Below, in pieces: positions 1-54,505 of a stretch of DNA of 64,000 nucleotides. The position numbers were made by a program, and so were the translations under genes. Below the pieces are notes generated by a model that was not told where the DNA came from, searched no databases, and was given only the letters and a program-made list of their open reading frames with translations. This DNA comes from Geosiphon pyriformis uo1. Taxonomy: Eukaryota; Fungi; Glomeromycota. Every line of letters begins with the position of its first letter. Position 1 is the stretch's first letter. Location of the stretch: contig JAAOMT010000515.1 of assembly GCA_016748015.1 (NCBI GenBank), positions 62,001 through 126,000 on the forward strand, given 5' to 3'.

Positions 1-1168
1 ATATCCAAAACTGATTTGTCGCAATGTTTCCACAACTCATTCGAGATACCAGAGAGACCAGCTGCCTTCCCATCAGGCAGGTTCGAAACAACACTAGACA
101 TCTCATCAAAATCAATTAGGCTCATTACACCAGAAAAAGCGTCATCAAAAACATACTCTAAAGGCTGATATTGGCAATCCTAGACACCAGTAACATCAGA
201 AACTACATTGTGCTTCCTAGTCCATCCCTCCATGACTGCATCTACTTTGGCCTTAACCAAAGCAGGCTCCAAAACCAATTCATTATCAACAACCAGATGA
301 TCCAAAGTTACTTTGCGAAAAAGACGTTCCAATACACTTTTAATAGTATGACTTTTGTCCAATTCAAAACTTTCCATCCTCTTATCTATCGCCAACCTGA
401 TTTGAGATTCCTTAACTCGCTCTGCTTCCGACATTTTGGATGTGCAATAAGACTTTTTGACCTTAGACAAAACTGACCGAATAGCATTGAAGTGGGAACC
501 TGATAGGAAGAGAGACTTCACCGCAGAAGCGTTGACCAAATCCAAACCTTCTTACCTGTCAAGCAAGGATGTAAACTCCCCAGCAAAATCCATATAAGAT
601 GCTTTAACCAACTTAGACACCAAGAGCTCTAGCTTGTGAAATTTGGACGAATTCTTGCTAAAACTTTTATCATATCCTTTGAACCACTTTTTCTTGAAAA
701 CTGCCTCAGCAGACAGACACATCACTCTATGGAGAGTGACTCACATCGAATCCAAGTCTGAGCGGACCTTGGCTGCAAAAAAATCATCATGAAGCATAGC
801 AGCATTTGCCGCCGTATCTTCTTTAAATTTGGCCCATTTAACATCATTCGCACCTTTGCAATCGTACTTCCAGCAATTTCTATTTGCTTACTTGCGAACA
901 GAATTCAACTGAACATCGAGCAGACCACCCAAACCCACTAACACTGAGATAGCCTGATGATCAATATTAAAGTATTCCCCAACACCAAACACATCGCGAC
1001 CCACTATCGCATTAACCAGATTTGAAGAAACAAACATAAAATCAATCATCTTAGCAACGCCCCGAGAATTGGACCAAGTCGGCAATTTCCAACAGGAGCT
1101 TCCACCCAAGGCATTAACCAGACCCAAATCCAGACACTTTTTAAAACTTGCACACTTGCGAGAACCGT
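1..1168 (-). mobile_element. LINE A, ORF2 continuation (end of APE endonuclease, linker, start of RT); runs off the window
   Basis: Minus-strand fragments PTWSNSRGVAKMIDFMFVS, DHQAISV (APE C-terminal motifs) and PDGKAAGLSGISNELWKH (RT entry). Joins in frame to the piece beyond 11089 once the LTR element is removed (GGDFNED-G-SRKCASF). Confidence 0.85.
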
Positions 1169-2141
1169 TGTTACCAGAGGTTTTTGGTCTCTTTTCTTAA
1201 ATGTTGTTAATGTCTGTTTGTTGTGAATTCATGTTTTCTAGAAGTAGTTAAACCTCCAATAACTGAATTTATCTTCAAATTATCTCTTATAATTTGAACT
1301 GCTGGGCTTATAAGTGGAATGGCCAATTCCGTGCCAGTTGTTTTGTGTAGTTACATTGTAGTAAATGTCAACTTTTTCCCAGGAATTGCTCGTCTGGAAG
1401 CTCACCAAAAATGTGTAGTTACTTTGCTGCAAAAGTCAACTCTTCTACAGGAATTTCGTCTGTAGGCTACCCTAATGATTGTAATAAGAAAAGAAAAGAA
1501 AAAAATAAAAGAAATGTAAAAGAAATAGAATTTTATCAAGAGAAACGTTTTCTATCCAGGCCTGGAGTCACTAACAGTTTACTGAAATTGGTAGCTAATC
1601 AATTTCAAAATGTTAGTTGGGTTGTGGGAATTTTCCAAGTACAATAATTAAAGAATTTGGTTTTTCGAATTATTTGATATTTATTTCTTTTTGTGTGTAT
1701 AGGAATGGTTTTAAGAAATAAATCTAAAGTAAGATACATTTTCCAGAAGAGAAAAGCTCTTCTTTTATACAATTTGTTGTAGTACTAGTTTATGAACTTG
1801 CACTTTTTCTCTTTGCCCAAATTCCAGCAAACTAAAGATACATTTTGATGAACTACAAGTTATTTTGTTGAACTATTAATTAATTTGGGTGAACTATTCA
1901 TAATTTTGGCGAATTTCTGTAAATTTCGGCGAATTTCTGAATGTTACAAAGTTCAGGGTATTGTGTAATTTGATCATCTTACTTTCTGTTATACTAATTA
2001 GATTATTTTAATTGAATCGTGATATGTGATAATTGATTAAATAATAAATGATAATTTGAAATGATATTAATATACTAATGAATTATAGGAATTATAAGGG
2101 TAATTTCATGCTAATTAATAGCTAAAATTCTACTGGTAACA
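1169..2141 (-). repeat. 3' LTR of Gypsy A1
   Basis: TGTTACCAG...CTGGTAACA termini; direct repeat of 10076-11089. Confidence 0.95.
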
Positions 2142-2829
2142 TAATCTCCTCCTCAAGACTGAGCTCCGTCGAAGTCCAAGCACTATCTGTAATATTGAGA
2201 TAGTGATCTAAAATAATTGAAGTAATCTGGTCTGAAAATTGTTGAAATTTCAGTTCTGTGAGTTTGCCAATGTGTTGGACTTTCATTGATTGCAGTATTG
2301 GATTTTGTAGAACATTTTCACAAGTATTAAACAAATCATAGAGTCTAAAAGCTGCTCTAAGTTTGTAGCGAGTGTTTGTTGGTCCAGCTGCTGTTTTGAA
2401 TTCATTGTAGATTTGTTTTTGTATAACTTCAGAAGTGAGATTTGTTGCTTCAAGTTCCAGTTTTCGTTCATAAAGTGTTTTTCTAATTTGAAAGTATTTA
2501 TAGATAAGAGTGTGTTCATTGCTCTGTTCATTAAGAAGTAGTAGTAGTTTTTGTTGCATTGTAGCATCTGGTGGAATGTCAATAGGAGCAATTAGCAGAT
2601 TTTCTTCTAGTGCCTGCTTCAAAAGTCTTGGTAATCTATTCTCAGAGTGACTTCTTGTTTCTCTTTTATAGGGGTGATAATTCTGTAAATGATTTGCTAC
2701 TGGGGCTGTGGTTTCTTTCTGAATGTATTTAATTTGACTTCCATTAATTGTTATAGATAAGTCAGGGAGTGTTTTTAAGGCTAACATTAATTTTTGGGAT
2801 ATTTGTTGAATATTTTGGGGAATAATCAT
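2122..2829 (-). CDS. Extra 3' ORF (ORF3, 235 aa) of Gypsy A, unknown function
   Basis: Intact ORF downstream of integrase that reads through the PPT into the LTR; homologues in A2 (~39793-40416) and in family B (~25460-26130). Confidence 0.75.
   Translation of the reverse strand: MIIPQNIQQISQKLMLALKTLPDLSITINGSQIKYIQKETTAPVANHLQNYHPYKRETRSHSENRLPRLLKQALEENLLIAPIDIPPDATMQQKLLLLLNEQSNEHTLIYKYFQIRKTLYERKLELEATNLTSEVIQKQIYNEFKTAAGPTNTRYKLRAAFRLYDLFNTCENVLQNPILQSMKVQHIGKLTELKFQQFSDQITSIILDHYLNITDSAWTSTELSLEEEIMLPVEF
2142..2154 (-). promoter_or_regulatory. Polypurine tract
   Basis: Minus-strand GAGGAGGAGATTA directly before the 3' LTR. Confidence 0.85.
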
Positions 2830-2972
2830 GATAAAATTGACTAATTATGAAAAGAGAGAATAAAGAAAATTATTTTTTGGATATGGAGTTTTTATTTGTT
2901 TTTGGGTTTGGGTGTTTTGTAATTATTTACTATTTTTGTCTTTGTGTTTTTAGTATAGAATTATTGTAAAAT

Positions 2973-5900
2973 TTAAGTGTTCAAGTTTGGTTGTTGTTTT
3001 ATTATAATTATTGATTCTAAATTTCGAGGAATATCTTCAGGATTAATTAAAGGGGAATGTGTACCAATTTGTGGAATTAATAGTTCAGAATTGTTTCTGG
3101 AATGATAGTGTTTCAGTCTGTCTCCATGTGCAACTTTTGCTAATATTTTGTTATCAAGTCTTAACTTATATGATCTATTGCCTAGAATTTCGTAAATATA
3201 AAATGGTCCATCCCATTTGTTTTCAAATTTCCCACTCCATTGTTTTTCAGCCTTAGTTCTGTGTAAGAGAACTTTATTTCCAACTTTAAATTCATTGGTA
3301 ATAGATGGTAATTTGTTGTTATGTCTTTCTTTTTGTTGAGCTTGGGAATGTTCAATATGAGCTGCTGCTATTCTTCTTTTTTCTTCCAATGTACTAAGAA
3401 GAGTGTAGGCTCTTCTTTGGAGTGTCTCTTGAAAGTTTTCTTCATTGATTGGTTGCACTGGGTATGTTTCCACTGTGAAATTAATTGGTAATGTTGCTGT
3501 CCTTCCATAAGTAAGATCAAATGGTATGTGTTTCGTAGTATCTTGTTTTAGTGTTCTGTATGCTAGTAACACTGATGGAATAAAGATATCTCATTCCTGT
3601 TCAAAGTCTGTTGAGACTTTGGCTAAAGATTCACACAATATTCTGTTGAAACGTTCTACAAGTTCATTTGTTTGAAGGTGATAAGATGATGATAGAAGTC
3701 TTTTGACATTGAACCATTCACAAATTTCTTGTATCAAGTTGTTCACAAAATGTGTTCCTTGATCAGATAAGAGTTCAATTGGGCATTCATGTCTACAGAT
3801 AATGTCTTCATAGATGAATTTTGCTACTGATTTTGCATCTGCTCTTTGGATGGCTCTAGCTTCAGGCCATTTGGTAAGATAATCCACTGCAACTGCAATA
3901 TAACAATTTCCTTGGGTTGTGATAAGTAATGGTCTGACTAAATCAATTCCAACTCTGTCAAAAGGTTGTCCAACTTTGATTGGATTTAAAGGTTCTGTGG
4001 GACGAGTTCCTCCTCTTCTTTGGCAGTTATCACAAGATTCTACATATTGTTGAATGTCTTTTTGCATGTGAGGCCAAAAATAATGTTCAAGGGTTTTTTG
4101 AATTGTTTCCTCTTTTCCCAAGTGTGCTGAAGACAGATCTGTGTACATGTTGTATAAAATTGTTTCTTTTTCATTCTCTTGTACTAATCTGAGTGGCTGG
4201 TTTGGTTTTCTGTGATTTTTATAATAAATTTTGTTCTGGTGTATGAAATATTGTTTTAATTGGTGTTGTAAGCGGTGTTTTTCACTTGGAGACCAGTTTT
4301 CTGGCATGGTAAGGGTCTCCAAATAATTTTTAAGATTGCTGTAGTTTCTGGGATCTATTCTTGTTTGGTTATTTTGTTGGTAAGTTGGTAAGTTGTGGTA
4401 GAATTGTTGTTGGTATTAATCTTGTCTCATTCTTGAGAGGCTATCAACATTGGTATGTAGTTTTCCTGGTTTGTGGTGTACAATATATCTGTAGTCTGCT
4501 AGGAAGTCATTCCATTGAGACTGTTTGGTACTTTGTTTAGTTTTCTTTTTATTGAGCCATTTGAGGCCAATGTTGTCCATTATTATGTCAAATTCTTTTC
4601 CATTTTTCAGATATTGTTGAAAATGTTTAAGAGCCCAAATAACTGCAGCAGCTTCTAATTCAGTTGAGCCATATTTGAGTTCTGTTGGCTTGAGTGTTCT
4701 GCTGGCATAGACAATAACTTGTTCTTGGCCATTTTCATCTAATTGTGATAAGATGGCACCAAATGCTATGTGTGAGATATCAGTGGCTAATTGGAATCGT
4801 TTGTTGAAGTCTGAATAAGCAAGAACTGGGGCTGTTGTCAATTTTGTTTTGAAAATTTCAAAAGCTTTTTGTTGTTCTTCAGTCTATTTGTATGGTATGT
4901 TTTTGTTGGTAAGATAATTGAGTGGTTTGGCAATTTCTGAGAATCCTTTTATGAATTTTCAATAGTAAGAGGCTAATCCCACAAATCCTTTTAGTTCTGT
5001 AGTATTTCTGGGAGTTTGAAAGTTTTTGACAGCATTGATTGTTTCTGGATTTGGTTTGATTCCATCTTTACTAACTATGTGTCCAAAAAAGATCAAACTT
5101 GTTTTTCCAAAGTGACATTTCTCAATATTTAACGTTAATCCTGCTTTCCGTAATCATTGAAAAACTTCTCGCAAGTGAATAATATAGACTTCAAAGCTTG
5201 GTGAGTATACATCAGTATCATCAAGATAAACAACTACTGATTGCCACAAGAGCCCTTCATAGACAACATCCATGAGTTGCTGAAATGTTGCTGGTGCATT
5301 GCAAAGTCCAAAAGGCATAACATTAAACTCATAATTTTCTTCTTGAGTAGTGAATGCTGTTTTGGGTCTATCTTTTGGGTCCATTTCGACTTGCTAGTAT
5401 CCACTTTCCAGGTCTAAAGTTGAAAAGAACTTGGCTTTTCCCAGAGCATCTAGCATGTCATCAATTCTTGGAAGAGGATAGGCATCTCTGATTATAACAC
5501 TATTCAGTTGTCTATAATCAACACAGAATCTAATTTTTCCGTTTTTCTTTTTAACCAAAACTACTGGTGAGGCCCAAGGACTTCTTGATGGTTGAATCAA
5601 TCCGTTATTGAGCATTCTTTGGACCTCTTTTCTGATAAATTAGTGGCTGGCAAGTGGCACTCGATAAGCTTGTTGACGTTTTGGTAGAGCATCTCCTGTA
5701 TGGATCTGATGTTGAACAATATTTGTTTTTCCCAAGTCATTGTTGTCTTTTGCAAATATATCTGCAAATTCAGCTATCAATTGTTTCAATTGTCTTTGTT
5801 GTTGAGGTTCTAAGGGACCCATATTGATTCGAGAAAGTTTTTCTTCCAACAAGTGGTAGTTTTCAGTAGTGGGAATGATATTTGGATTTAGGAGTAGAGT

Positions 5901-8900
5901 GTGCTTTATAATTTCGATAAAATTAGAGACAATTTAAGGGTTTTCATCTTGAAAGATATTGTTGTGTATGATTCCAATTTCTAATTTGTTTAATAAAACA
6001 ATAAGGTAATTATTGGGGTTGTAGAATGTAACTCGAAATTTTTTCATTCCTTTGGGAATATAAACGTTTGGAATTGATATTTCGTGCTTCAAACAGATTT
6101 GTTCATTAGATTCAAAGATTTGTTGTGTAGTGATGGGTTTTGAGCAAGTGTAAATTTCGTGATGTTCTCCAAAAGGTGAAATGGTAATTGGCTGAGGAAG
6201 TTGAAGAATCTGGTGAGATTCATTTTGTGTATTAAGAACTATGTTTACTGAAACTGTAAATTGTCCAGTTGAACCAAAACCTTGAGTTCCTCTTTCACTT
6301 TTTCCTAATTGTTCTCTGTTGTTTACTGATTGTAAACCCGAAATGTTGATTAAGAGTAAGTAAATTGCTTGAGCAATTTTTTCAGCATGTTCAATTTTGA
6401 ATGGTTTGTCTGTCTCATTCTGTAACATGATGGTAATGTCTTCAGTGTATCCTGCATCTATAACTCCTCCTCTAATATTGATTCTTTTGCTTGCCAATGA
6501 TGATCTGGAGGCAATTTGAACCATTGCTCCTGGTGGAATTTCAAGAGCAATTTTTAGATTGATTTTTGTCAAAGACTTTGGTTGAAGAATCAAAGTATCT
6601 TTTCCTGAGTATCTCAAGTCATATTCAGCATCAATTTTGTGTGCTTTTTCTGGTCTGATTCCTTGGCCATGGTTGTCAAAATATTTAAGTTGTAGAGGTG
6701 GTTGCTTTTCAAGAAGATAGATGGGAGTGGTTGGTAGTTCTTCTACTTGTTCAGATACTCCAAATTCGATTTCATTTTCATCATTCTCATCTGGCAAAGG
6801 AATGCTAAGAGCATAACATTCTAAACACCATTGGTCATCACAAGGCATAACACATTCTTCACACAATTGAATGTTCATTTGCTCTAATCATTGAATTTGA
6901 GCTTCTTTGGTCGGATATGTGTGGCTTGCAATTTGGTGGTAGGTTTCTACTTCATCTTCATAATCAAATCCAGCTAATTCTATAGTGTACTTAATATATT
7001 CAGCTTCTTTCATTTGGCAGATATCTTCTTGAATGGCTCCATTGATTAATGCCATTGCTAGGTCAAAAATCATTTCAGCATCATGAGGGTAGTGGTAAAG
7101 TTTATTAAGAGCACTGTTGTATGCTGCATCAAATAGTGTCCCTCTTCTGACTTTTTCCGAAATTGATAGAGCATATTGACAGGTTTGATTACATACTCCT
7201 CCTCTTATTGCTACATCAATCCAATTGCATTCTTCTGGTAGTATTTCTCCACATGTAAGACAAGATGTGCTGTCCCATTTTCCACTTCTTTTTGGAGATC
7301 CAAATCGTTCTCTATGGCATGCTTTGCAAAAGTAACAGGTACGAGTTTCATATTCCTCTTCTGGAGAAATACATGCTCCCATTGATGAAAGTTTTTTGTT
7401 GCAATCTTTGCATTTGAGTGGAATATAGAGTGGTTGTTTTTGTGGTTCTGGTGTGGAATATCTAACTTTTTTCCATCTCCTTGATTCTTTAAAAATTTCT
7501 TGTTCAGTTTCTTCAGCTCAATTGGATGTTGATCCAAGAGCCATGTAGGTTTCAGTAAGTGGCATTTCTTTCTCCTCTTCAAATTCAAATACTGGAGCTT
7601 TTTCTGATCGTTTGTTAAAGGTACCACAGGTTGCAGGTACTATAGTATATTGTCTTTGGTATGAGATTTTAAGTTCTTGAGTTTCCCAGTTCAGATTTGC
7701 ATTGGCCTTGAGAAGCCAATCATTTCTGACTAGAGCTTGGTATTAGGGTGCATCCATAACAAGAACTTTAACTAGAATGGTGATTCCATCAATTGAAAAA
7801 GAGAAATCATCAATTTCTCCTACTGGAGTCTTTTTCATATCATCAGCTGTGACAATAACTGTTTGAGCTGGTCTGTCTACGTTTTGTTTGAGTTGTTGCA
7901 TCAGCTGATAAGTGATGATACTTTCAGCTGATCCACTATCTAAGATTAAGCGTATGGGTTTTCCTTTTACTATAGCTTCTGTGTACATGGCAGTAATTGC
8001 TTTCTGTTCATTGACTGCTGCATTACTAAGCAGAAATGGTGATTCATTTGCCTCAAATTCAAATGGAAATATATCTGACAGATTAGCATTTTGGGCAATT
8101 TGAGCTGGGGAAATGGTGTGGTTGGAAGAATTTGATCTTGGTGCTGTAATTTCACCTTTAGTTTGTTGAAAATCCGATTCCTCTGGTATTGTGAGATAAC
8201 TGGGTTGAGTGTAATAGTGATTGGGTCTTTGCTGGCCCAAATTTCGGGAACCAACTGGTTATTTGGATTGATTCTGTTGTGGTTATTCTGCAATTGATTT
8301 TGGGGTGTGGATTGGTTATGTTAAACCAATCTTCTTGCTGGTACTTGATATTGTTGAGTGGGTGGTGTCTAATATGGCTGAATTGGTAAAGGTTGCTGAT
8401 ATTGTTGCTGCATTGATTGTGGAGCTGGTGGATAGTAACTGTTTTGATTTTGTGGTCTTGGTGAATAATAAGTTGGTGGTGGAGATTGGTAATAGAATTG
8501 TTGTGGTGAAGAGTAACGTTGATTACTCCTGTTTTGTTGGTCTCTTTGTAATTTTCTACAATCTCATTTCCAGTGCCCTGGAATTCCACAATAATGACAA
8601 TTTTGAGATTGGTTGTTGGATGATGATCCAAAATTGTTTTGGTTGTGTCATTGTAGGGGTTGATATCTTTGCGGTTGTTGTTGCTATTGTTGTTGGTTTG
8701 TAAAGTAGCTTTCAACTTTTTGTGTGAGTTGGTCTATCTTTTTTTCAGCTGCTGAGCTGGTTTCTCCAATTGCAAGGTTTACAAGCTTGGTGTGATTTGC
8801 TTCTTCCATTGTCATTTCATAGCTTTTTGCATGTCTAATAGCAGTTGCTAAGTCTGCTGGAGCATGTAGATAGACTTTCTTAATTAGTTTGTCTTTTAAC

Positions 8901-10027
8901 CCTGCTATAAACTAATCCAGAACTTGAGCATCAGAATAGTAGTCATTGGTTTCCAATTGTCAGATTCGTCTGAGAAGTTTGTTAAATCTTCCAAGATAGG
9001 TCATAACAGATTCAGATGTTTCTTGTTTGATATTGCGAAAGCAGTTTCTGAGAGTGATAGAGATATTGTTGTTGGTGAATTGTTGTAGAAAAGCATCTTT
9101 GAATGCTTGCCAGTTTTCAAATGGTTCTTCTAAATTTTCAAACCATTCTCCTGCTGTTCCTTGGAGAAAGTAGGGAATTGCTTTGAGCATTTTTGCTGCA
9201 ATCCAACCATTTACATCTCCTGCTTTTTGAACTTTGTCAAGCCATTCTTGGGGACTGATATCATTGTTTTCACCAGTAAATTCTGGGATTTTTGCAATGT
9301 AAGCAGTTGTCATTTCTTCTTCGTTTTCTGGAATTTCTTCTGGTTCTGATTCAGTTTCTTTACTTTCCAAGCTTTCTGAGTGATTACTTTCGTTTTCCTG
9401 TAAGTAATCAATGATATTGGCACTTGTTGATATTGGTTCCTGTTGTTGAGTAGGATTTCTAAGTGACTAAAAATTTTCTGGTCTGGAGAAATGGCTAAGT
9501 GGTAAACTTGGTGTTTGTGGTTGAACAAGTGAAATTGGAAATGGTGTAATAGAAAGTGGTAATTTGATACTGGTTCCTTGTTCAGGTGTTTGCAAGTGTT
9601 TAGCAGTTGTCTTTTGTAGTGTTGGAGTGTTTGGAGTGGTTCTTGAGTATTGCTTCAATCTTTGTTTGCCTTTATTGCTTGTTTCTGTCTCTGAGTCAAA
9701 GTCAAAAAAGTATTTAGACTGTACTGGGTATTTTTCTTTACAATGCTTAATAATATTAAAATTAAGTTCTTGGAAGTAGGTAACAAGTGTTTCACTGTTT
9801 AGGTCTTCTGTTCCCAAATGTGAATAATGCACTAAATTATTGTAGAGGTTACTTCTAACTTCTGAAACGTTGTAGTTTCCAAAAAGATAATTGTTGATGT
9901 GGTTTTCAATATATTGGTATACTAATTTCTTTACAATTTCAATTCCATCTGGAATGTTGAATCTTTGCTTGCAGTGGATGTAAATTGACTGGTAATACTC
10001 TAAAGTTGCTGTGTCTGGTGTGGTCAC
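2973..10027 (-). pseudogene. gag-pol: gag-pol polyprotein (ancestrally one ORF): gag with CCHC knuckle, aspartic protease, Cys-rich domain, dUTPase, RT, RNase H, integrase
   Basis: CHYCGIPGHWK..C; LILDSGS (~7935); VVVYLDD (~5220); RNase H LATD..ELE; integrase H-H-C-C, D..D..E and WDGPF. Fragments share one frame apart from a 1-nt deletion near 8246 that is absent in copy A2. Confidence 0.93.
6264..6670 (-). other. dut: dUTPase domain within pol, between protease and RT
   Basis: Trimeric dUTPase motifs DAE/GYDL, IASRSSL, GGVIDAGYT, KIAQAI, RGTQGFGSTG. Confidence 0.92.
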
Positions 10028-13644: not shown

Positions 13645-14000
13645 TCACGTGTTGGATCTGACCACTTAGGAGCCACTGCAAATGTTGTGTCTGCTTGTAA
13701 TGATGCACCATCAGCTAGTATGTTGGTTTACACTGACATACGAAAGTCCTCGTTTGCCTGCTGATGGGCATACTGAACGTCCGTATGGATATTTGTCGTC
13801 CTATTTGCCACAGACCACTATCACGTGTTGGATCTGACCACTTAGGAGCCACTGCAAATGTTGCGTCTGCTTGTAATGATGCACCATCAGCTAGTATGTT
13901 GGTTTACACTGACATACGAAAGTCCTCGTTTGCCTGCTGATGGGCATACTGAACGTCCGTATGGATATTTGTCGTCCTATTTGCCACAGACCACTATCAC
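13645..14000. repeat. Tandem array of 176-bp unit upstream of nuclease exon 1 (>=2 units, gap-flanked)
   Basis: CTGATGGG at 13761 and 13937 (period 176). Confidence 0.9.
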
Positions 14001-14506
14001 NNNNNNNNNNNNNNNNNNNNNNNNNNNNNNNNNNNNNNNNNNNNNNNNNNNNNNNNNNNNNNNNNNNNNNNNNNNNNNNNNNNNNNNNNNNNNNNNNNNN
14101 NNNNNNNNNNNNNNNNNNNNNNNNNNNNNNNNNNNNNNNNNNNNNNNNNNNNNNNNNNNNNNNNNNNNNNNNNNNNNNNNNNNNNNNNNNNNNNNNNNNN
14201 NNNNNNNNNNNNNNNNNNNNNNNNNNNNNNNNNNNNNNNNNNNNNNNNNNNNNNNNNNNNNNNNNNNNNNNNNNNNNNNNNNNNNNNNNNNNNNNNNNNN
14301 NNNNNNNNNNNNNNNNNNNNNNNNNNNNNNNNNNNNNNNNNNNNNNNNNNNNNNNNNNNNNNNNNNNNNNNNNNNNNNNNNNNNNNNNNNNNNNNNNNNN
14401 NNNNNNNNNNNNNNNNNNNNNNNNNNNNNNNNNNNNNNNNNNNNNNNNNNNNNNNNNNNNNNNNNNNNNNNNNNNNNNNNNNNNTTACTTCACCTTGTTC
14501 ACTCAA

Positions 14507-17500
14507 ATGGCAGAGTATTGGACGAAAGTTGAAAAACCATCACTACTCACGTACCTCACGTACCTGAAAGAGCATCAAGTATCAACTAAAACCCTACGGA
14601 AGAGAAGATCTTACAATCAATATGTTACCGAGATAAACACAATATTGCAGTTTGAAAAAAACAAGAGTCGTCTGAAAATAGCAACAAGAGCGCTAAAAAA
14701 ATTTATGGAAAGTCTGGTTTTTTAGAAGGCGGCATTTCTCGTCCGACCACTTAAGAGCTATGGCAAATGTTACGTCTGCTTGTAATGGTGCACCATCAGC
14801 TAGTATGCTGGTTTACACTGACATACGAAAGTCCTCGTTTGACTCCTGATGGGCATACTGAACGTCCGTATGGATATTTGTCGTCCTATTTGCCACAGAC
14901 CACTATCACGTGTTGAATCTGACCACTTAGGAGCTACTGCAAATATTGCGTCTGCTTGTAATGATGCACCATCAGCTAGTATGCTGGTTTACACTGACAT
15001 ACGAAAGTCCTCGTTTGACTCCTGATGGGCATACTGAACGTCCGTATGGATATTTGTCGTCCTATTTGCCACAGACCACTATCACGTGTTGGATCTGACC
15101 ACTTAGGAGCTACTGCAAATGTTGCGTCTGCTTGTAATGATGCACCATCAGCTAGTATGCTGGTTTACACTGACATACGAAAGTCCTCGTTTGGCTCCTG
15201 ATGGGCATACTGAACGTCCGTATGGATATTTGTCGTCCTATTTGCCACAGACCACTATCACGTGTTGGATCTGACCACTTAGGAGCCACGGCAAATGTTG
15301 TGTCTGCTTGTAATGATGCACCATCAGCTAGTATGCTGGTTTACACTGACATACGAAAGTCCTCGTTTGACTCCTGATGGGCATACTGAACGTCCGTATG
15401 GATATTTGTCGTCCTATTTGCCACAGACCACTATCACNNNNNNNNNNNNNNNNNNNNCTGATGGGCATACTGAACGTCCGTATGGATATTTGTCGTCCTA
15501 TTTGCCACAGACCACTATCACGTGTTGGATCTGACCACTTAGGAGCCACGGCAAATGTTGTGTCTGCTTGTAATGATGCACCATCAGCTAGTATGCTGGT
15601 CTACACTGACATACGAAAGTCCTCGTTTGCCTGCTGATGGGCATACTGAACGTCCGTATGGATATTTGTCGTCCTATTTGCCACAGACCACTATCACGTG
15701 TTGGATCTGACCACTTAGGATATCACGGCTAATGGGGACATTATTTGATCCTTCTTTTGACCCTTCTTTTGACCCTTCTTTTTTTGAATCACATTATCTT
15801 ATGCTTTTTTTATTTTGATTTAGGTTGAGAAAAAATCAAATGAGGTTAAGGCGTTCTGGGTAGGTTGATGATTTATAGTTTTCAATTTAACCATTTCAAA
15901 AAATTGAAAAACTGTTATTAAATAGCTTAGATATCCAAAAAATAAATCAATCTCTTTGAACGGCAAGACAGAAGAATCTTCTATTTCATTAGTTGAAACT
16001 AAAGTATTAAATCAGGAAAGACAAGATGATGGGGATATTGGTTTTGATAAACGAAGCTGTGTGAATAAGGTATTTTTTTGCTGCAAAGCCTACAACATGA
16101 ATTTTTTCTCACATTTCGAATATATATAAAGATAAGGACCAGCATTGGGACAGAGACCCCGAATAGCTCATCAGCTAATTCTTCGTATGTTCTACCCTCT
16201 CCATCCTCTTTCGATTCCTTGGAAGTGTTGATTGATAAAAGCAATAAGTATTATTTGAATTATTTCACTGGTCCTGGTATAACCGATTGGGTTCTGAAAA
16301 AAGCTTCAATTCGAGTAAGTGTTTTTAATGCATTAAGTATTACATAATATATCAATTGATTTTATATATTATTTCTTTTTTTCCAAATAGTGGATTGTAT
16401 GTGACGTTGATATCTCCGAAATATGTCTGGAGTACCGTGCCACTACTATTCAAAAGTGTGAATGTGAATCCACGATGGTTACTCTCAGTGCCAATGAAGA
16501 ATTGTTGGTATCATATTCCAATATTGATAATGAAAACAGCACTAGAATATATGATGATTATTTCTTACTCTCTTTTTATAGGGCTCTAAGCCATGTATTC
16601 GTTTTTCAAGAAGACAATTACGAATTTCAAGAGTATTTTGATGATGAAGTGTGGGAAAGCCTTTTTATTGAGTTTCGAAATCTGTATCCATATGAACCAA
16701 TCTCGAACGAAGTTTGTGAGTTGTTCGTGAAAGTTGTTAAGGTAATACATATATTATTTACTGTGTTAATTGTTATTGATGTTAATTTTGACCAGGTTTG
16801 TCTTTCATATTTTAGACTGCATCTGAGAAACCTAATCAACGAGAACGTCGAGCAATTTTAACACATTACTTGGAAGATTTCGAGAACACCGACAATGAGG
16901 ATGAAATGATGGTAGAGCTTATCAGGAACTTGTATGTTTCATAAAGGTTGCTAATTTGTGTTTTGTTTTGTTTCAATGAATTTATCCTTACTTGGGTATT
17001 ACATGTTATTTAGAATTGAAAATGAATCGTCTTCATTTACGAAAAATTATCACAATGAGGACACTCATATTCATTACAATGTTGCTCCAATAATACGACC
17101 TTTTTTTAAGAGCAAAAAGACTGTTGTTGATTGGGCAAACAAAATGTCTGTATCATCAGCATTGGCTAAAAAATCCTTTGATCCAAGCCTTTTAGGCGCC
17201 AAGCCAGATTTTACTATCAAGACAATAAATACTAGAAAATATATTGAATTGCTTATTGGAGAGGTAAAACCACCTAACACCAGGGATGTATTAATCGATA
17301 AAGATTTGATCTCTCTTGGAAAAACAATGAAGAATGCTTTGGATAAATCCATTGAGGATGGCGTGAATGATATGATTATTTGTGGGTTTCAAATAATTGG
17401 TAAGTAGCATCCTTTTTGGAAATAAAAAAATGATATTGTTTTCCTTCTACATTAATTATTTCATTTTATATTCCTAGGATTCTTGGGAAGAGCCTATGTA

Positions 17501-17844
17501 ATGGATCTCTTGTTTGATGGGGTTTATCGTATGCTAATGATTGGAGAGTTTAGGCTCCCAGAAGGTTATACTTCGTGGGGCACCATTTTAGGGTGCTATC
17601 AAATTCTGAACACAATTAAGGTAAGTATGATTAATTACGTAGATATTATCTGTACATTATAATTAATCGTGATGTATTTGTTCAGGTTATTGTTGATAAG
17701 GGAGCTGTTCATTATCAGTCTGCCATAAGAAAGAATGTCAACCAGACAAAATCTGAGAAGATAAAAATGATCAAGCCGATGTTTCATAGTCCGATGAAGG
17801 TACCAATTGGTAAAAACCCTGACGATCGCAAGTATAAAAAATAG
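14507..17844 (+). CDS. 10-exon gene, ~546 aa, C-terminal PD-(D/E)xK nuclease fold (Crinkler/CR-REase-like). Exons 14507-14707, 15824-15859, 15926-16069, 16132-16314, 16391-16503, 16582-16741, 16816-16931, 17014-17399, 17478-17620, 17686-17844
   Basis: Manually spliced frame is open end to end. Introns 2-9 are GT-AG; intron 1 starts GAAAGT. Motifs NEDTHI..IIRPFF, KPDF, IGEVKPP, DLISLGKTMK, GFQIIG, YVMDL..DGVYRM, FRLP. Confidence 0.8.
14745..15734. repeat. Intronic tandem array of 176-bp unit (>=5 units; 20-N gap)
   Basis: GAAAGTCCTCG at 14827, 15003, 15179, 15355 (period 176) and 15615. Confidence 0.95.
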
Positions 17845-18652
17845 ACCTTTATTCTATGCAATGTATCTAATATGGACTTAATCTTAGCTTTTTATTAAAA
17901 GCATTGTAAAAAATTTGTACGCTCATATTAGAAAAATAATATTTCATTTAATATGAATAAAGCTAGTGTAATATTTGAACTACAAAAATATTTTCTTAAT
18001 TATAATTAAATTGATTTTTTTATGTTATCATCCAAACGCAAAGGGATGGGAAAGTTCAATTCAATTTAGGTATGATCTTGCATGGCGAATGTAAATTCAG
18101 CGTCCTTCTGGCTTCAAAAAGCGGCTGGAAAGCTTATTTAGAAGCTGAAATGTTTTTAGTGAGTATTGAACGGTACATAAAGAACAATAATAAATATCAA
18201 GCTATAAGACTACTTGGGATGAAGCGTATGACCATTTTTGAGCCCCGGGAATGAATGCAATTTTTTTTAAGCTTTTCAAAGCATATATTTTGAGATTTCC
18301 AATTTTCATAAAATTATAAATTGAATAAAGTGGAAGAATCCCCGATGAACTTTTTCAATTTGTCTTAAGCAATTTTATATAAATGTTATATAGAACAAAA
18401 TTGTTTATTAATATTATAATCATATTTCAAACGAAATAAAATTTAGGATTTAAAATTCCTTTAAAAGAAATCCTATATAATGTGCTTTCCTGCCACAATA
18501 TAATTGTTGCTTGAACTCTAGCCTAAATCAAAAGAGGAGAGTGCGACTAAAAATGAATCATCTTTTTTATAAACTTCTCGGAAATTATAGAATATCGAAG
18601 CAACAGTTCTTTGTATATGCTATGTAAATCTTCAGAATAAGTAAAATAATAA

Positions 18653-19353
18653 GGGGACGAACATATATCACGTCATTATTGATTACTATAGGACCATCCC
18701 TCCATAATAATGTTATCTCACATTATAATAATATGCTATGCATGATGCACAATTATAAATACATGCACTATAAATATATGGCATGATCAAAATTATTATA
18801 AAAATATACTAGCCTAAGCATCTCAACTTATCGCATTGTCCTATTTATATAAAAATGGCCACGAATTTGTGTCTAATCTAATGTGTCTTTTATCTCCTGA
18901 TCTAGCGCGTCTTTTATTTCCTGATCTAGTGCATCTTTTATTTCCTGATCTATCGCATTTTTAATATTGTATTTTTGATTTCATTTATTGCTAAACTTTC
19001 CTAATATGCAAGTTTTCCTAACTATATCACAATACAACAAGTTTTATATTTATAAAACTCCTACAAATCAACACCAGAGATTTTGCAATGCATTTGGATA
19101 TAATCGTATGGTAAACACAGGAAATCCAGCATACTAAAAGTTCAATTTATGTATCATAAATTAGACTGCATTTCTATATTTTAATTGGCTAATAAATCAT
19201 GTGCCATTTAAAGTCGTAAGATTTTGACATTTCTATATTCTAATTAGCTAATAAAAATCCAAAATCACATACCATATAAAATCATGTGAAACATGAGATT
19301 TTGAATCCCCCCCCTCCCCCCCTTTTATAATGACGTGATATATGTTCGTCCCC
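18653..19353. mobile_element. Non-autonomous DNA transposon (MITE) with ~27-bp TIRs and TWA flanks (Zator- or PIF/Harbinger-like)
   Basis: GGGGACGAACATATATCACGTCATTAT ... ATAATGACGTGATATATGTTCGTCCCC; flanks TAA/TTA; subterminal C-tract; internal 24-bp x3 repeat (~18885-18960); absent from the paralogous site at 57940. Confidence 0.85.
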
Positions 19354-21558
19354 TTATTTAAAATATTAAAATATTCTTTAATTTTTAATTATTTAATATT
19401 AAATCTATTTTTTTAACTAAATTATAAATATAATTCTTTTTTATTTAATTTTATTGTAAAAATCAGATTTAAACAAGTTAAATTCTATATTATAATATTT
19501 AATAATATCTAATTATTGATATTAATATTAATATTACTTATAATTAAAACATATTTTATAACAAATATAATTGTTTACAACTTAACAAAATAAATATAAT
19601 ATTATTAATATATTTTTAATAATATTTAATAAACTTAATTTTTTAACAGAATTATTAATAAATATCACAATTTTATTTAAATATTTATTAAATCTAAATT
19701 CAAATATTTATTAAAATTAATATTTTGTTTAATGTTATTTTTATTAAAATTATTACTTAAAATTACAAATAAACTATTATTTATTGTTTTAACTATTATA
19801 GTATTAATATTACTAATTTGTTTTAATTCAATTATAGAAAAAATATTTGTGTAAAAATCCAAAATAATAATTAAAACTTATTTTTAAACAGTAAATAAAT
19901 TAATAAAAGCTAATTAAATACTTTAAAAACTTTAAAAATATGTTTTATTAAATTATTATTCAAAATAATTGCAATTTTATTATTATTATTATTATTATTT
20001 AAACAAGTATAATCCAGTTATTATCAAGTATATAAAATTAAATTAAATAATTCCAATTAAATACAACTTATGTATCTATTATATGTAATCAGCTACTAAA
20101 GCCAATTTAGGTAACACTACATACTTATATGCACAATTAAACTATTATTAATATCTAAAAAAAAAACATAAAACAAATATTTACCAAAACTAATTACCAT
20201 TAATTCAATAATACTTAGCATATAAACTATTTTATTCAACAAATTCATATATAATCTATTAATTACTGTAAATACTATATTATCATTACTTACTAACTTA
20301 AATTTCTTTGTTTTAGATTTGTGCCTAGTCTTAATTAACTATATTTTTTGGTAATAAAAATTAACCAATCAGTAAAAAAACCCATCAGTATAAAACTTAC
20401 TTTTTTATTATTATTATATATTGCCAAAGCATCTTTGAACCAATTTTTTATAACAAAGTTTTTGCAAAGTACCATGTACAAAGTGATATTAAAAAGACAA
20501 AAAAAGAGAGTCTACAACACAAAAAAAGACTCAAACAATTTACTACTAATTAAAAATAACTAATACTTAATATAATTTAATATCAAATTCCTTTACTGAT
20601 TCATATTCTTTAAGTATATAAATAAATAATCTGAAAATTTCATATTTTTATAGAATAAACAAAAAACATCTAAATATGATTTATTATACAATTTCTTACA
20701 AACAGCAACTAAAAGTCTTTTATAAATAGTCTTTATTATATAAATTTTAAAATAGACTGTGGTTCTACTAATAAAATCAGTAAACATATAAAAGTTAAAA
20801 TGCCAAATCAAAGTGGTTCTGATCCAATTAACATCAAAAACAAAAAAATTAGTAATAATTTTGGCACCAAAACTCACTTTTTAGTATATATTAGAAATTG
20901 TTATATAAATATTCCAAATAAAGTAATATGTATTATCAAATACAGTTATATTATTAGTTACCAAGAATTGTTCTAAAATTTCAATAAGAAAAAACAAAAA
21001 GGAGTAAATAACAGTTTTAATTAACTTATTTGTTTAATTATTTTCAAAAATATCTAAATAATTCTTAATTTTAAACCAAACCATTTTTAAATTCTTGTTT
21101 TTACTAAATTGACAACATAATATTTTTCTATTCAATATTAATTGTAAAAGTCTGGTCCAAAAGAATTAAATTCCAAAGTATATGTGTTAATAGCTAACTA
21201 ATTATTAAGATATAAAATCACTATGCTAAAAAAAGACACATATTTTAAAGCCAAAGCAACAGTCTACAGCTTAGTTATAATAGAAAACAACATTTCAGAA
21301 ACTTTAATACTTATGTTTACATTTATATTTAAGAAATATACAGCTGTTTCTCCAATTATTTTTAATAAGCCTAAATCTTTAAGCAAACTATATATGTACA
21401 TATTAAAAACATCAGCCCAAATCTCATATAACAAATCCTTAATTAAACCAAAATTATCTAAATTCAAAATATTATAAAACACTAAGCCCAAAACATTTAT
21501 TCTACTCTTAATAACAGATTTAAATTTATCTAAAAAACTAGTTACAACAATAAACCAT

Positions 21559-30500: not shown

Positions 30501-33500
30501 ATTTCTCTTGTTATTTAGGCTGTTCAAAATGCTCTAAAATGCATGGTCAGCAATAAAACTTGGTTGCCATTAGCCATTTTTTATTATTACTACAGCATAT
30601 ATCTATTGATGACAATTTTTTGCCACAGTTAACACATACTAACTTTGGTTGACAATAGTAAAATTGAGATATAGTGTATGGAATATAAGTGGAAGTGATG
30701 GTATAAGTGAGTTTTTTTTTTCTTTTGTCTTTTCAAATTAAAATTGGCAGTAGTTTGTTGTGATTATTTTTGGCCCATAACACTTGATACACTTCCCAGG
30801 TAGGTTTGTTTTTTCTTTTTCCAATTTTATAAGTGGTGTTGGAGTAGAGTTTGTCTGAAAGTGGTCACACATGACTGGTACACATGTATTCTAACTGTTT
30901 TGACTGAGTTAAAACTCTTATATAGTCTAATCAAATACTGTATTGGTTTTGAACAATCAGTTATTGCCAACTAATGCTTGATATTGAGTTGCTTTTATCA
31001 CCAAGACTTTGATGAAAGCTATGATACCATTGACTTCAAAAGAAAAGTCGTCAATTTTACTAATAAGAGTTTTAGTTGCTCTATCAACTATAATGATTTT
31101 GGCACTAGCAGTGCAATCAACTCGACAACCTAATTGGTCCATAAGTTGTCATGTGATAATGCTGTCTATTAATCTACTATCAAGAATCAGTTTAATAAAC
31201 TGACCATCAACTTTAACATCAGTATACATTGCAGTAATGAGTTTTGCATTAAGAGCAGCTTTATTAAAAAGAGGTATTTTTGTTGGTTTCTTTATTTTGA
31301 AGGGAAAAATTGCTGCTAATGATTTGTTATTGGTAACAGTTGCTGGTGGAATGTTACTGGTAAGTAGTATTTGGCTAGTTTTCTGATTGTTGGTTTGAGT
31401 ATTTTTTGGGATCACAAGAAGGCTTAAATAGTTCTGAAAATTCAGGTTTTGGGTGTACTTGGTTCCTGAATTCTACTGACATGGTCCTGATTGTGAAGTT
31501 GATAAATTGGAAATTGGTTGATGGACTACTATTACCAATCTCCAGTTTTGTTGAATAGTTTTCAGTTTTTGATTTCCAGTGGATATTGTTATTTGTGGTA
31601 GTATTTGGATTTGTTAAGATTAATAAATTATTTGTGGTTGTGGTTGATAAACAACTGGTGCTGGAATTTAATAAATGGGTGATTAATAAATTGGCTGCTG
31701 TGTTATTAGTAGGTAATTTGGTTGATATAGTTCTGGATTTAATTGATAATTCAGAGTTTGAAATTGGCAATTGGGATTTTAATATTGATTTTTCAATTAT
31801 TGGTCATTTAAGTAGTTGTAACAGTCAATTTGTAAGTGCTTTTGTTTACCACAATAGTGGCAACTATGTATTTCAGTTCACCATTGCTGATTGGTGGATG
31901 ATAATAATTGTTAACTAAGTATCTTTTTAATTTCTAATTAATGAATTCTGTTAATTGTTTTAGTTTCAAATTCAGATCAGATGATTTGTTCATTACTAGA
32001 TTAATAGCTTGAGCATGGTTGGCTTCTAATTCAGCTGATTTTAAATCTTTGGCATGGTTAATGGTGTTCTGAAAAGTAGCTGGGCATAGTAAATGTACAT
32101 ACTATAGTAAACTGCTGCACAACTTGCAAATAAACTGATTCAAAATTTGGAATACTGTAAAGTAATTTGTGTTAATAGCCTGAATTTGACATAGATTTTG
32201 ATAGAAATATCTCAAGTAAGTTGTGACTGCTTCAGTGTCTTTTTGCTTGATAATAGTGAAATTAGTTGCTAAGCAATTAATACTGTTATAATTACTGAAA
32301 TATTACAAGAATACAACTTTGAATGCATTAAAATCTTGGAGTTTGTTTACAAAATTTTGGTACTAAGAATCAATGGTGTCTTGTAAAAAGTACAAGACGG
32401 CTTGCATTGTTCTAGTGTTATCCCAGTTGTTGGTGGTTATTGCTTTGGCTATGTTATTGAGCCAAACTTGGGTGTTATCTTCTTTGCTGGTGAATTTTTC
32501 TAGCTTAACAATTGGTATATAAGTCATTAATACAATTAATGATTGTTAAGGTAACTATTGAAATGGTTGTTGAAGTGGTTGTTGCTGAGATTGTGATAAT
32601 GGTATGACAATTGGTGGTGGATTGATCATGATTGCTGGAGATAAGTTTTACTAATTAATAATGTTAAGGTTCAAATTATTCTAATTTGACAGAGTTAAAA
32701 CATATAAAGTTTGGATTTTTGGGTTTTCTGAAATTAGGTTTTTAATATTAATTTCCTGATCACTATTTTCTTCTTTGGAGTCAGTTAATTCTCAAGAACT
32801 GGTGGCTCCGAAATCTGGTAGTGGTAATGGTGATAATTAAACTTCTGATAGTATTAGGAATTGTAATTTAAATCCCTCAAAATAATTGCCATATGTTCCT
32901 AATAACTCTGCTTTTTTCTGTTTACTTTAGAACAAGATTCTGTTCAATAGTGTTGTTATACTAGCTGTAGATATATCTATTATATTGATAGTGCTTCTGG
33001 GTGTGTAATAATATAATAGATTAGCAAGTGAATCAAATCTTTGTTTCTTTCAAGTAGGTAGTTAGATTTGCTTTGGGATTTTTGTGGGTGTTTGTAATTT
33101 TCCTTTTTCTTTGTCAGCAAAAATGATAAAAAATCTTTGCTTGATGTATTTTTCAATTTCTTTGTTTATTTCTGTGATTAAGGATGTGAATAAATAGTTT
33201 TATGAAAGAGTAGTGCTTTGGAGTAGTTTACTAAAAAAATTGTTGAAAGTGGATTCTGGATCTCTTTGACCTCCCAAGTAGTATGCAATTCTTTTGTTGA
33301 TGTAACAATTAAAAGCTGATTCTGTTAGCCAATTACTATTTTTTAATCCGAAATGGGTGTGATAATGTTGGAATAATAATTTTGCAAATTCCAAGTGGTT
33401 TGTCTCTGTTTCTTTGGATTCTGCCACTGTTTCAGATAATTGCTGTTGGTGCTGATTCTCTGTTGAATTAAATTTCATAGAGAGCACCAAATGTTACAAA

Positions 33501-34439
33501 TGATTATTTGGGATCTCAAATCTAATAACAAACCTGTAATTTGGTACTCAAGAGCTATAATTGATGGTATTGTCTGAAGATTTTACAATCTAAAGGTTTT
33601 GTATCTAAAAGTTTTGGTTAAGTCTTTTGTATAATGAACAGAGATTCAATGGTGTGCAATTTTTTGGTGATGAGTTTCCCAATTTTTTTTTTTAGCTTGG
33701 TGGCTGGTTTATTCTGGCAGTTGTGTTCTTCTGGTAAGCTATTCAATTATTACTCTGTACTCTTCTATTCAAGTCTTTTACCAGGCTATCTGAGATGTCA
33801 ATAACTTAGTACTTAATCCTTAATCAATTAGTAAACAACAATAAAAAATGAAATAAAAAAAGTAAAAGAAAATAAAGAAAATAAGTCAAGAGAATGGAAG
33901 TTAGTATTCCATCAATAGTCATAATTAAGAGTTATTGTTTTAGCATAATTAAGTATTGGCAACTATCAACATAAAGTGTTAATAGTCAAAGTTTGATAAA
34001 TGTTTCTTAATCAAATAATAGCAACATAAATTGGATATGTATAAGTATTTTATTGATATTTTGATGATTTCATTTTAGTAAATATAAACTATCTGTAAAG
34101 TGACTAGTAAATAAATAGAAAAAAAAGTTCAAAACTAAAAAGTTTTGATCATTGTTCTTTTTTTCTGCTTTTAATGCTCTTGCTATATATACATAATTTA
34201 GGTTTTATGAAATTGCTTATATTTTCGAGTGATGTGTTATAATTTCTTGAGCAATACTTATATTGCTAAACAATGTGCCCTAATTTTCTAATATTGCTTT
34301 ACATTGCTAAGCAATGTGCTGTAATTTCTGATATTGCTCTATATTGCTAAGCAATATGCTTTTATGTTAACTACTATTTTCTTATTGGTCTATTTGTTTT
34401 TTCTATTATTTTCTTTATATGTTTTTTTTATAAGTAATA
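24561..34439 (-). mobile_element. Ty3/Gypsy family B element, degenerate (LTRs 24561-25455 and 33492-34439)
   Basis: PPT from 25456; PBS TGGTGCTCT at ~33481-33489; relics of gag, PR (LILDSRL), dUTPase (~29370-29730), RT, RH, IN and ORF3. No TSD match and LTRs differ markedly, so probably recombinant. Confidence 0.88.
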
Positions 34440-34624
34440 CTTAAAAAAACTATAAAACATGTACTTATTACTACTGTAAAGCATATTATAGAAAACATTT
34501 TAGTTACTCAAAACAACAGAGAAAATGAGACAACAAACTATGTTTTACTTGCAAAGAAATGCTACTTAACAAAAAAATATGGAATAACATTTTTGGTTAA
34601 GAAGAAATATGTAATATATCATGC
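34440..34624 (+). mobile_element. Gypsy internal fragment (Cys-rich region)
   Basis: YYCKAYY / CFTCKE relic homologous to CYFCKAC / CLTCGE of family A. Confidence 0.55.
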
Positions 34625-36938
34625 TATTACTTATAGAAATTAGGAATATTATAGTTAAAGAAATAACCAATCAGAAATAGGCATAGTAACAGAAGAATTT
34701 TAGGATTTTAAGAATCTTATATAACACAAAATATGTATATATAACAGTAGTATTAAAAACAAAAAAAGTATTCAAATTTTAGTTTAGTTCCAAGTTAACA
34801 TCCCTTTTATTATCTATTAATTAACTTTTATTTCACAAATAGTTAATATTAGCTAAAGTAAATTCATTAACACAATCACAAATAAAAACATATTTATTAT
34901 CATCCAATCCATGTTATTACTGCTTGATTGAAAATCTAATTACTCTTCTATTTATTAACATTTTATGTTGATAATATCCAATACTTAACCATACTAAAAC
35001 AATAGCTCTTGATTATGGCTATTGACAGAATACTAATTTTTTATATTTTTTCATTTTTCATTTATTTTTTTTATTTTCTTTTGTTGTATTGACTTATTAA
35101 ATGATTAAAAAAATTAAGCACTAAGTAATTGATGTTAAAAATAGTCTGATAAAAGACCCAGAAATAAGAATATAAAAATTATAAATTAATAGATAGCTTA
35201 TCAAAAGAACATAACTGCCAAAATAAACTGGCTATCATGTTAAAGAAAAAAATTTGATAGAATAATTATTCTAAAAGATTACTGACACAACTATTAAATC
35301 TTTGTTCATTATACAAAAGACTTCACTAAAACTTTTAGATACCAAAACCTTCAAATATAAAAACTTTTAGATCACAAAAACCTTTAGATTTACCAATATC
35401 AGTCAAATTATTAAGCACCAAGTTACAGGTTTGTTATTTGTATCAACACCCCAAATAATTATTTATAATATTTGGTGCTCCCTATAAGATATAATCTAAC
35501 AGAGAACTAGCACCAACAATAATTATCTGGAACAGTGGCAAAATCAGAAGAAACAAGAACAAATCATTTGAGATTTGTAAAAGCTTTATTTCAACACTAT
35601 CAAACTTACCTAGAATTAACCAATAACCATTGGCCAGCAGAATTAACTTTCAATTTTTATGTCAATAAAAAGATTAAATCTCATTTAAGAGATCAAAAAA
35701 ATCCAGAAGCAGCACTTATTAATTTCTATAGCAAATTATTTCAGAGTACTACACTGCTACAGAATTATTTGTTTACTTTAATAATTACAGAAATTAACAA
35801 AAAAATTAAGAAACATATTAAACAGAAATTCCTTATTACTTTTGTAGACAATAAAAAAGAAAAATTACAAACTCTGGCAGAAACACCAAGAAAAATATGA
35901 CTTCTTATGTAAAAGAAGCCAAGAGTCATTTTATTTATACACCTATTATATCATCATATGTCTGAAAATACTATTAATATATTATTTAGAGGTGCATTAT
36001 CATCAGCAAAAGTGCTATTAACAAGAATAAAATTCTAAAACAGCCAAAAAAAAGACAATTTATTAGGAATCTATAGTGATTACTTTGAAAGATTTAAATT
36101 GTGATTACCAATATTATCAAGATTTTAATTACTGCTGCCTCAATCTAATTTCAGAGTTACTAGTCCTTAGAAAATAATCAACTCAAAAGAAAAAAAAGAT
36201 AAAAATCAAGAATTTAATTACCAAAATCTGATTTCAGAAAACCTAGAAATACAGACTCAAATTATTCCAACTCAGCAAAATCAGAATAATTTAAATCCTT
36301 TTTTTTTGTTCTTCAAAACTTATCTCCAGTAATTGTGATCAATTCACTACCAGCTGTACCAATTACCAAACCACAATAACAGTTGCAACCACTATTCCAA
36401 CAACAACAACTTTAACAACAACAATTACAATTATTACTTACACTACTGGTTTATACATCAATTGCAAAACTTAAGAAATTTATCAGCAAAAAAAATAATA
36501 CACAAGTCTGGCTTAATGATATGAAAAAAACCATTGCAGCCAATAGATAAGATAATGTTAGAGCATTATAGACAATCCTATATTTTTTTCAAGATACCAT
36601 CAATTTATGATATCAAAGCTTGATTCAAAAACCCCAAAACTTCAATGTGTTCAAACTAGAATTTCTAAAATATTTTAGTAACAATAATAGCATCAATTGC
36701 CTAGCAAATACTTTTACAATTATCAAACAAGGAAATATTGAAGCAGTTACTATTTATTTGGAATGCTTTCACTAAAATTTGTAACAAATACAAGTCATTA
36801 ATGCAAATTATTTTATTGTGCCACAAATCTTAAACCAATTTATTTGTGATCTGTGCAGTAGTTTTTTATAATGTATACATTTAATATACCCACAAATACT
36901 CCAAAACACAGTCACACATGTCAGAGATTTTGAATCAA
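34625..36938 (+). mobile_element. Family B 5' LTR (34625-35470) + PBS + gag stub, truncated by the next LTR
   Basis: LTR end followed by TTTGGTGCTC; gag relic at 35535-35900 matches 33200-33490. Confidence 0.8.
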
Positions 36939-54010: not shown

Positions 54011-54505
54011 GGTAACGGCAAATGTTGCGTCTGCACCATCAGTTAGTATGCTGGTTTACACTGACATATGAAAGTCCTCGTTTGACTTCTGATGGACATA
54101 CTGAACGTCCGTATGGATATTTGTCGTCCTATTTGCCACAGATCACTATCACGTGTTGGATCTGACCACTTTGGGGTAACGGCAAATGTTGCGTCTGCAC
54201 CATTAGTTAGTATGCTGGTTTACACTGACATATGAAAGTCCTCGTTTGACTTCTGATGGACATACTGAACGTCCGTATGGATATTTGTCGTCCTATTTGC
54301 CACAGACCACTATCACGTGTTGGATCTGACCACTTTGAGGTAACGGCAAATGTTGCGTCTGCACCATCAGTTAGTATGCTGGTTTAAACTAACATATGAA
54401 AGTCCTCGTTTGACTTCTGATGGACATACTGAACGTCCGTATGGATATTTGTCGTCCTATTTGCCACAGACCACTATCACGTGTTGGATCTGACCACTTT
54501 GGGGT
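54011..54505. repeat. Tandem array of 164-bp unit upstream of exon 1 of nuclease copy 2
   Basis: GAAAGTCC at 54070, 54234, 54398; unit equals the 176-bp unit minus TTGTAATGATGC. Confidence 0.92.

Follow-up and report, generated by a model that had tools for sequence, protein, structure and literature searches.

Gene Organization and Nuclease Domain

A 64,000-nucleotide stretch of the genome of Geosiphon pyriformis uo1 (contig JAAOMT010000515.1, positions 62,001 to 126,000; hereafter the window) contains, on its forward strand, a gene for a predicted nuclease in which the intron behind the first exon is filled with a tandem array of 176-nt units. An earlier note on this DNA had described an open gene of ten exons, and the model from the ATG at 14507 to 17844 is indeed open, with 546 or 549 codons according to the donor chosen. 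Exon 1 (14507-14707) encodes an N-terminal header of 67 aa, predicted to form a small all-helical bundle; it is followed by the array intron (14708-15823) and by a second header exon with the motif V-x-x-FW (exon 2, 15824-15859). Exons 3-7 (15926-16069, 16132-16314, 16391-16503, 16582-16741, and 16816-16931) contribute a low-complexity linker and a helical pre-nuclease region, exon 8 (17014-17399) holds the nuclease core, and exons 9 and 10 (17478-17620 and 17686-17844) close the frame. The remaining introns are short and AT-rich, as had been noted (introns 2-9, 62-82 nt, GC 0.17-0.27), and are backed by GT..AG joints in contigs of two sequencing runs, X2 and X3, which are taken to be RNA runs because their contigs carry these joints. 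Gap-free copies of the gene contain an additional upstream coding mini-exon and short intron at a place that corresponds to a gap in the window, and the array intron is therefore perhaps the second of ten.

The family consensus motifs EDT (17054), KPDF (17201), ExK (GEVK, 17258), and DL (17297) all lie in exon 8 and comprise the catalytic motifs of the restriction endonuclease (REase) fold. The searches used single exons or homologs as queries; the public annotation of the window gene is P0139. The structure model of a homolog, P0003, which is 57% identical to the window gene over exon 8 (mean predicted local distance difference test, pLDDT, 93.9), matches the REase folds of DrdV (Z 9.2, root-mean-square deviation 2.8), BpuSI (Z 8.6), and DUF820 proteins (Z 6-7). 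Judged from this model and the motifs, the window gene is a predicted nuclease of the PD-(D/E)xK fold, in agreement with the earlier assignment. A Foldseek search for the nuclease fold returned no match at E<=0.001. The P0003 model scores higher (Z 11-11.5) against REase-fold subunits in the large subunit of the mitochondrial ribosome, its best structural matches, than against true restriction enzymes. The top homologs that were looked up belong to Glomeromycota, with one match in Jimgerdemannia.

The gene family is modular. Nuclease cores that are 70-84% identical carry unrelated N-termini, as in the modular architecture of CR proteins; in one pair, P0132 and P0135, the nucleases are 84% identical, and both the headers and the intron RNAs differ. 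The Crinkler-type context proposed in the earlier note is borne out by this exchange of headers and by a relative, P0149, that carries the Pfam Crinkler domain (PF20147). Pfam searches with single exons and with 57 family members gave no match above noise, searches of the header fold and of the ESM Atlas gave no specific match, and Pfam did not find the ubiquitin-like LFLAK header (PF20147) in the window gene. The gene fits the CR-REase architecture with a helical header, not that of a canonical LFLAK Crinkler (PMC5289972). Like the CR REase proteins (Zhang et al. 2016, as reviewed in PMC5289972), it joins a swappable N-terminal header, here helical, to a REase-fold C-terminus and belongs to a multigene family of early-diverging fungi; unlike CR proteins, it has no LFLAK header, kinase, or NTPase. 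The accessible CR papers mention no intronic RNA element. Crinkler-related nuclease genes belong to the families that have expanded in arbuscular-mycorrhizal fungi, whose many nuclei in a shared cytoplasm raise the question of how so many nucleases are restrained.

The Intronic Array and its Copies

The array (14745-15720) consists of 176-bp units that are 95-100% identical. At least five had been counted before; the number is at least six once a 20-N gap (15438-15457) is corrected for, since the left flank of the gap stops at unit position 165 and the right flank resumes at position 102, so that at least 112 nt are missing. The gap is intronic and touches no reading frame. Summed DNA depth suggests ~12 units per gene copy. 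Across units, which are 92-100% alike, variation takes the form of scattered substitutions and one 12-nt deletion. Unit comparison found no spacers between or inside the units, and in lacking variable spacers the array is unlike CRISPR- or TIGR-type guide arrays, as had been stated from the start.

Six near-identical copies of the gene carry the 176-nt unit, always directly after the header exon; they are recent (93-100% identical). The first copy (14507-17844) retains the full open frame and intact catalytic motifs. The second copy in the window (54745-57046, forward strand) comprises a partial header exon ending at 54833, an array intron (54834-56199), and exons from 56200, interrupted by large gaps. 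Its array (54870-56120) is built of one 176-nt unit followed by 164-nt units, and an in-frame stop at 56323-56325 falls on codon 8 of exon 3. The claim that the same layout recurs at 54011-57046 thus holds for the array intron; the copy is largely gaps, and the units placed upstream of it are probably misplaced.

The same applies to the units reported upstream of exon 1. The blocks in question, two units at 13645-14000 and three 164-nt units at 54011-54505 (both on the forward strand), are islands flanked by N gaps in both window copies. Three gap-free copies, two with an exon 1 identical to that of the window gene (L032 and L034) and one 94% identical (L033), contain no unit 20-mer in the 641-656 nt of AT-rich sequence at this place, and the gap estimates on both sides of the first island total 693 nt, close to that real distance. 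For these two reasons the islands are most likely, on sequence grounds, misplaced repeat contigs or scaffold pieces of the intronic array, and the assembly has probably created the apparent placement of arrays on both sides of exon 1.

Two other copies show irregular ends. In L031, the third copy on the contig (2841-4366; contig 137.3-138.9 kb, outside the window), header and array are followed by unrelated sequence, and the junction is seen in RNA run X2. At the contig end of L034 (4466-4754) an inverted piece of exons 8-9 follows the array, by assembly error or rearrangement.

Structure of the Repeat Unit

Comparison with paralogs yields a fold for the unit in which a three-way junction is followed by a small hairpin, then by a long arm, and at the end by another hairpin. 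In a unit on the forward strand, the core junction module (P1-UA-P2-GAAA-P3-P1', in which P2 is a long and P3 a short hairpin) occupies 14969-15028 and the small hairpin P4 15030-15048. The long arm (15050-15122), composed of a 10-bp and a 5-bp helix, an internal loop, and a distal stem, is conserved in paralog units. In the 164-nt units, a deletion has removed the loop and 3' strand of hairpin P7 (15123-15144). Across relatives, 87.6% of the junction cells are paired and five pairs show two-sided change, a result equalled in 0 of 500 shuffles, with slid controls at 24-65%; in the arm 94% are paired, with one A-U to G-C change. The unit consensus still allows 50 of the 50 comparative pairs at 68-72% identity to the distant paralog units. 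In paralogs, two loops per module share a gene-specific sequence that differs between genes (UUCG, UACG, UGCG, UGCUY, UUACUGG) and frequently forms a UNCG tetraloop; these twin UNCG-type loops have diverged or been lost in the window unit.

Rfam searches of the array and of six homologous loci gave no meaningful match. Readings of the unit as a hepatitis delta virus (HDV)-like or hammerhead ribozyme, prompted by motifs, were dropped after paralog comparison gave the actual pairing. Retrozymes and hammerhead satellites contain tandem units of similar length with a three-way junction and GAAA. A self-cleaving or mobile RNA of that kind riding in the intron would suit the 170-180-nt tandem units and the hammerhead-like junction order (stem, GAAA, stem, UC), but it is a very improbable explanation: the first linker is only the 2-nt UA, the CUGANGA catalytic core is absent, Rfam finds no match, and the copies are not dispersed beyond the header intron.

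Conservation of the RNA and its Linkage to the Header

Related sequence occupies the homologous intron of paralogs at 36-47% header identity: L059 and L062 each have 1.5 long units, and L058 has two short modules. One further long unit is present in L066, where a header exon is missing but a short stretch matching the end of exon 2 of L059 comes after the unit. A model search of the own genome placed 34 of 35 significant matches at header-intron loci, and the 35th resembles a deleted relic; weak pattern or model matches were also seen at C644:87805 and C707:152497. Outside this genome, an RNA-only pattern found two matches among 241 million metagenome records, both on soil-metagenome contigs, in the homologous intron, and of one lineage, and none in 596 Gb of prokaryote genomes or in viral contigs. 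As an out-of-sample test of the RNA model, a Funneliformis mosseae gene was chosen by header similarity. It has the module in the homologous intron, as the sole model match in 3.4 kb (E 0.0013); the module folds into the same junction (z -4.35), with identical linkers and different helix letters.

On this comparative sequence evidence, the unit is read as descending from a conserved, hitherto undescribed family of RNAs that Rfam lacks and that resides in the header intron of CR-type nuclease genes. The compensatory pairing change at a fixed intron position, drawn from few independent lineages, is the mark of a cis-regulatory intronic RNA. The pairing, the 34 of 35 header-intron matches, and the F. 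mosseae module uphold the earlier proposal of a structured RNA tied to the gene family. That note had named two outcomes that would speak against it, a unit scattered genome-wide and homologous genes without arrays; for the header class of the window gene neither was found. Present at a fixed place, the header intron, in two or more fungal orders, the family offers a concrete handle on nuclease control, and with a module of 60 nt and a header of about 80 aa it is small and experimentally tractable.

Within the wider family, the type of RNA goes with the header. In exon 5, identity to the window gene is only 19-26% for L058 and L059, which share the module, whereas genes that reach 48-62% there have unrelated RNAs or none. 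The RNA type thus tracks the header rather than the nuclease, a finding that speaks against both a guide and an antitoxin specific for the nuclease. In Rhizophagus and Diversispora genes whose header is a different one, a GC-AG intron holds another module of the same topology. The RNA model does not detect these modules and their sequence is unalignable, so they are treated as a separate RNA type. Three family members (L042, L044, and, for the intron, L049) lack any module.

Further repeats accompany other members of the family. Two additional types of structured intronic repeat, tied to other header classes, occur at L045 3228-3424, L050 3320-3500, and L047 3160-3400; the first of them is common to Rhizophagus and Diversispora and lies in a GC-AG intron. 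Diversispora and Acaulospora homologs have GC-rich tandem repeats of ~100-190 nt just 5' of the annotated start (L041 3704-3903, L048 2232-2549, and L049 2589-2862).

The earlier note had also considered that the RNA might guide the nuclease to its targets, or that the array might act as DNA, serving recognition or mobility. Co-transcription of nuclease and repeat RNA and the recent origin of the copies agree with these ideas. However, variable spacers are lacking, most loops are stable tetraloops, the type of RNA is not coupled to the clade of the nuclease, and what is conserved is base pairing. No terminal inverted repeats of the type found on DNA transposons flank the nuclease gene (Helitron-type ends lie outside that test). 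Both ideas consequently seem extremely improbable.

Transcription and Splicing of the Array Intron

Read contigs were aligned over 15533-18900. In both RNA runs they begin inside the last unit (15674/15705), continue uninterrupted across the acceptor at 15824, and run through exon 2 into exons that are spliced. The array is thus transcribed together with the gene, as had been proposed, and the 3' end of its intron is mostly retained. The donor at the homologous position is GA-AAGT in six of the six copies, with an in-frame GT-TTTT 9 nt downstream (14717); in some relatives the donor of the homologous intron is GC. GA-AG introns are spliced in some organisms, rarely (PMC7072748). Read as an effect of the RNA on splicing, the retention is confounded by the GA donor. 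Intron-retaining transcripts meet a stop a few codons into the intron, and the public annotation includes an 84-aa header-only protein.

The retained 3' end could also reflect an internal start in the intron, giving short 'poison' and long 'antidote' isoforms as in the wtf meiotic drivers. RNA contigs do link the 3' end of the intron to exon 2, and the promoter of the poison lies within wtf intron 1 (PMC9762604). The resemblance extends to membership of a multigene family and to an unusual first intron that decides the product (PMC9762604). Unlike the wtf drivers, the window gene offers no start codon that could be used past the intron: the acceptor carries an in-frame stop, and in-frame Met codons begin 150 codons further downstream, within the conserved region. 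The intron itself contains 33 ATGs. A promoter would need no conserved RNA pairing, and it is the RNA structure that is conserved. An internal start is accordingly rated very unlikely.

The ratio of unit depth to gene depth is ~12-fold in DNA, 14-17-fold in X2, and ~75-fold in X3. The last value hints at extra array RNA in one sample; contig depth is an unreliable measure, to which a truncated copy contributes. Type III toxin-antitoxin systems (ToxIN, CptIN, TenpIN) have tandem near-identical structured RNA units that are co-transcribed with a nuclease. By analogy, the array RNA could be a stable trans product, a multivalent scaffold or RNA antitoxin that binds the header and holds or neutralises the nuclease. 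Near-identical tandem structured units do stand beside a predicted nuclease and are co-transcribed with it, the paired loops share sequence within a gene and differ between genes, and the X3 ratio points the same way. Unlike the type III systems, the window system is eukaryotic and intronic, has units of 60-176 nt, and includes an RNA that does not track, or co-evolve with, the nuclease domain. The X2 ratio is moreover what retained introns predict, the truncated copy also transcribes the array, and some relatives do without a module. Such a trans-acting product is therefore considered unlikely.

A Proposed cis-Acting Brake on Splicing

The reading favoured here, to which even chances are given, is that the RNA element acts in cis as a brake on the splicing of its own weak-donor intron in a Crinkler-type nuclease gene, and that at the window locus it has been recently amplified and has partly decayed. 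In Glomeromycota, the exchangeable N-terminal header of Crinkler-type REase genes is split by an intron in which the RNA element, taken to be old, resides; its folded modules would restrain removal of that intron. The restraint would probably operate through protein binding at the two hairpin loops, either by a cell factor or by the gene's own header, the latter being a guess. Most transcripts would then end translation at the start of the intron and yield a short header peptide only, and the nuclease would be produced only when the array intron is spliced out. In the window subfamily the GA donor alone may explain much of the retention. Among the functions listed in the earlier note, the splicing switch fits best, and the guide RNA and nuclease antitoxin are disfavoured because the RNA follows the header.

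Intronic RNA structures that autoregulate splicing have known precedents (PMC8216456). Like those in the introns of ribosomal-protein, lysyl-tRNA synthetase, and metacaspase 1B genes (PMC8216456), the element has conserved pairing in one intron of one family and plausible feedback. It differs from them in having 1-12 repeats, in the assignment of an RNA type to each header, in its host, a nuclease family, and in being unrelated to any Rfam family.

Several observations weigh against a splicing brake. The pair counts rest on few independent lineages and are not probabilities, and kinship alone can beat shuffles. Among 19 distinct units, the density of variable sites is no lower in helices than in loops (16/100 versus 11/76, p 0.84); pair-keeping changes (10/18, p 0.08 under transition bias) show no significant excess, and the entire unit does not fold better than shuffled sequence (z -0.15). 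The header fold has no RNA-binding signature (best Z 5.3), and linkage between header and RNA would also be expected from mere position inside the header. Many carriers of the element are pseudogenes. Finally, contigs drop rare spliced forms, and the junction of exons 1 and 2 is not directly covered by them.

Part of this evidence bears on a different history, in which the ancestral element worked and its descendant at the window locus does not: the subfamily would have lost splicing at the GA donor, leaving transcribed near-pseudogenes with minisatellite expansion of a decayed unit. The GA donor is common to all six copies, one copy contains a stop, and another ends after the array. Header pN (nonsynonymous) is close to pS (synonymous) between copies, and 10 of 12 coding variants in the reads are non-synonymous. 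Among the units there is no signal of selection, the twin UNCG-type loops are gone, and the 164-nt class lacks P7. Against such a loss of function stand the full set of comparative pairs still possible in a consensus so distant from its paralogs, the open frame and catalytic motifs of the first copy, the occurrence of GA-AG splicing in some organisms (PMC7072748), and the in-frame GT 9 nt downstream. This outcome is judged unlikely. The rise from 1-2 units to 6-12 in the window subfamily would be ordinary tandem amplification under the splicing-brake reading too, and it looks neutral, because change is not depleted in the helices of the 19 distinct units and header pN is near pS. The window locus is thus an amplified, partly decayed example, and the two-unit paralogs are the better test objects.

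A bolder extension of the splicing brake, put forward tentatively and thought somewhat unlikely, is that every header class has a repeated RNA aptamer of its own, and that the two together make up an exchangeable cassette for protein-RNA control that works by splicing feedback, as an RNA antitoxin, or both. The header would bind its cognate twin loops, and the cassette could be fitted to different nuclease payloads. No eukaryotic header-aptamer system of this kind is described in the literature searched. The linkage suggests that helical headers may serve self-control rather than host delivery.

Other Repeats in the Window

The window contains further repeats apart from the array. Two copies of an approximately 8.5-kb block, 90-96% identical, lie at 1163-9664 and 38911-48475, and a 1-kb repeat at the block ends occurs five times in the window. 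A sequence of 1-2 kb is present as diverged (about 69%) inverted and direct copies at 32036-35997 and 34709-38241. Just 3' of the nuclease gene, at 18648-19358, lies a 711-bp element resembling a miniature inverted-repeat transposable element (MITE), with perfect 32-nt terminal inverted repeats.

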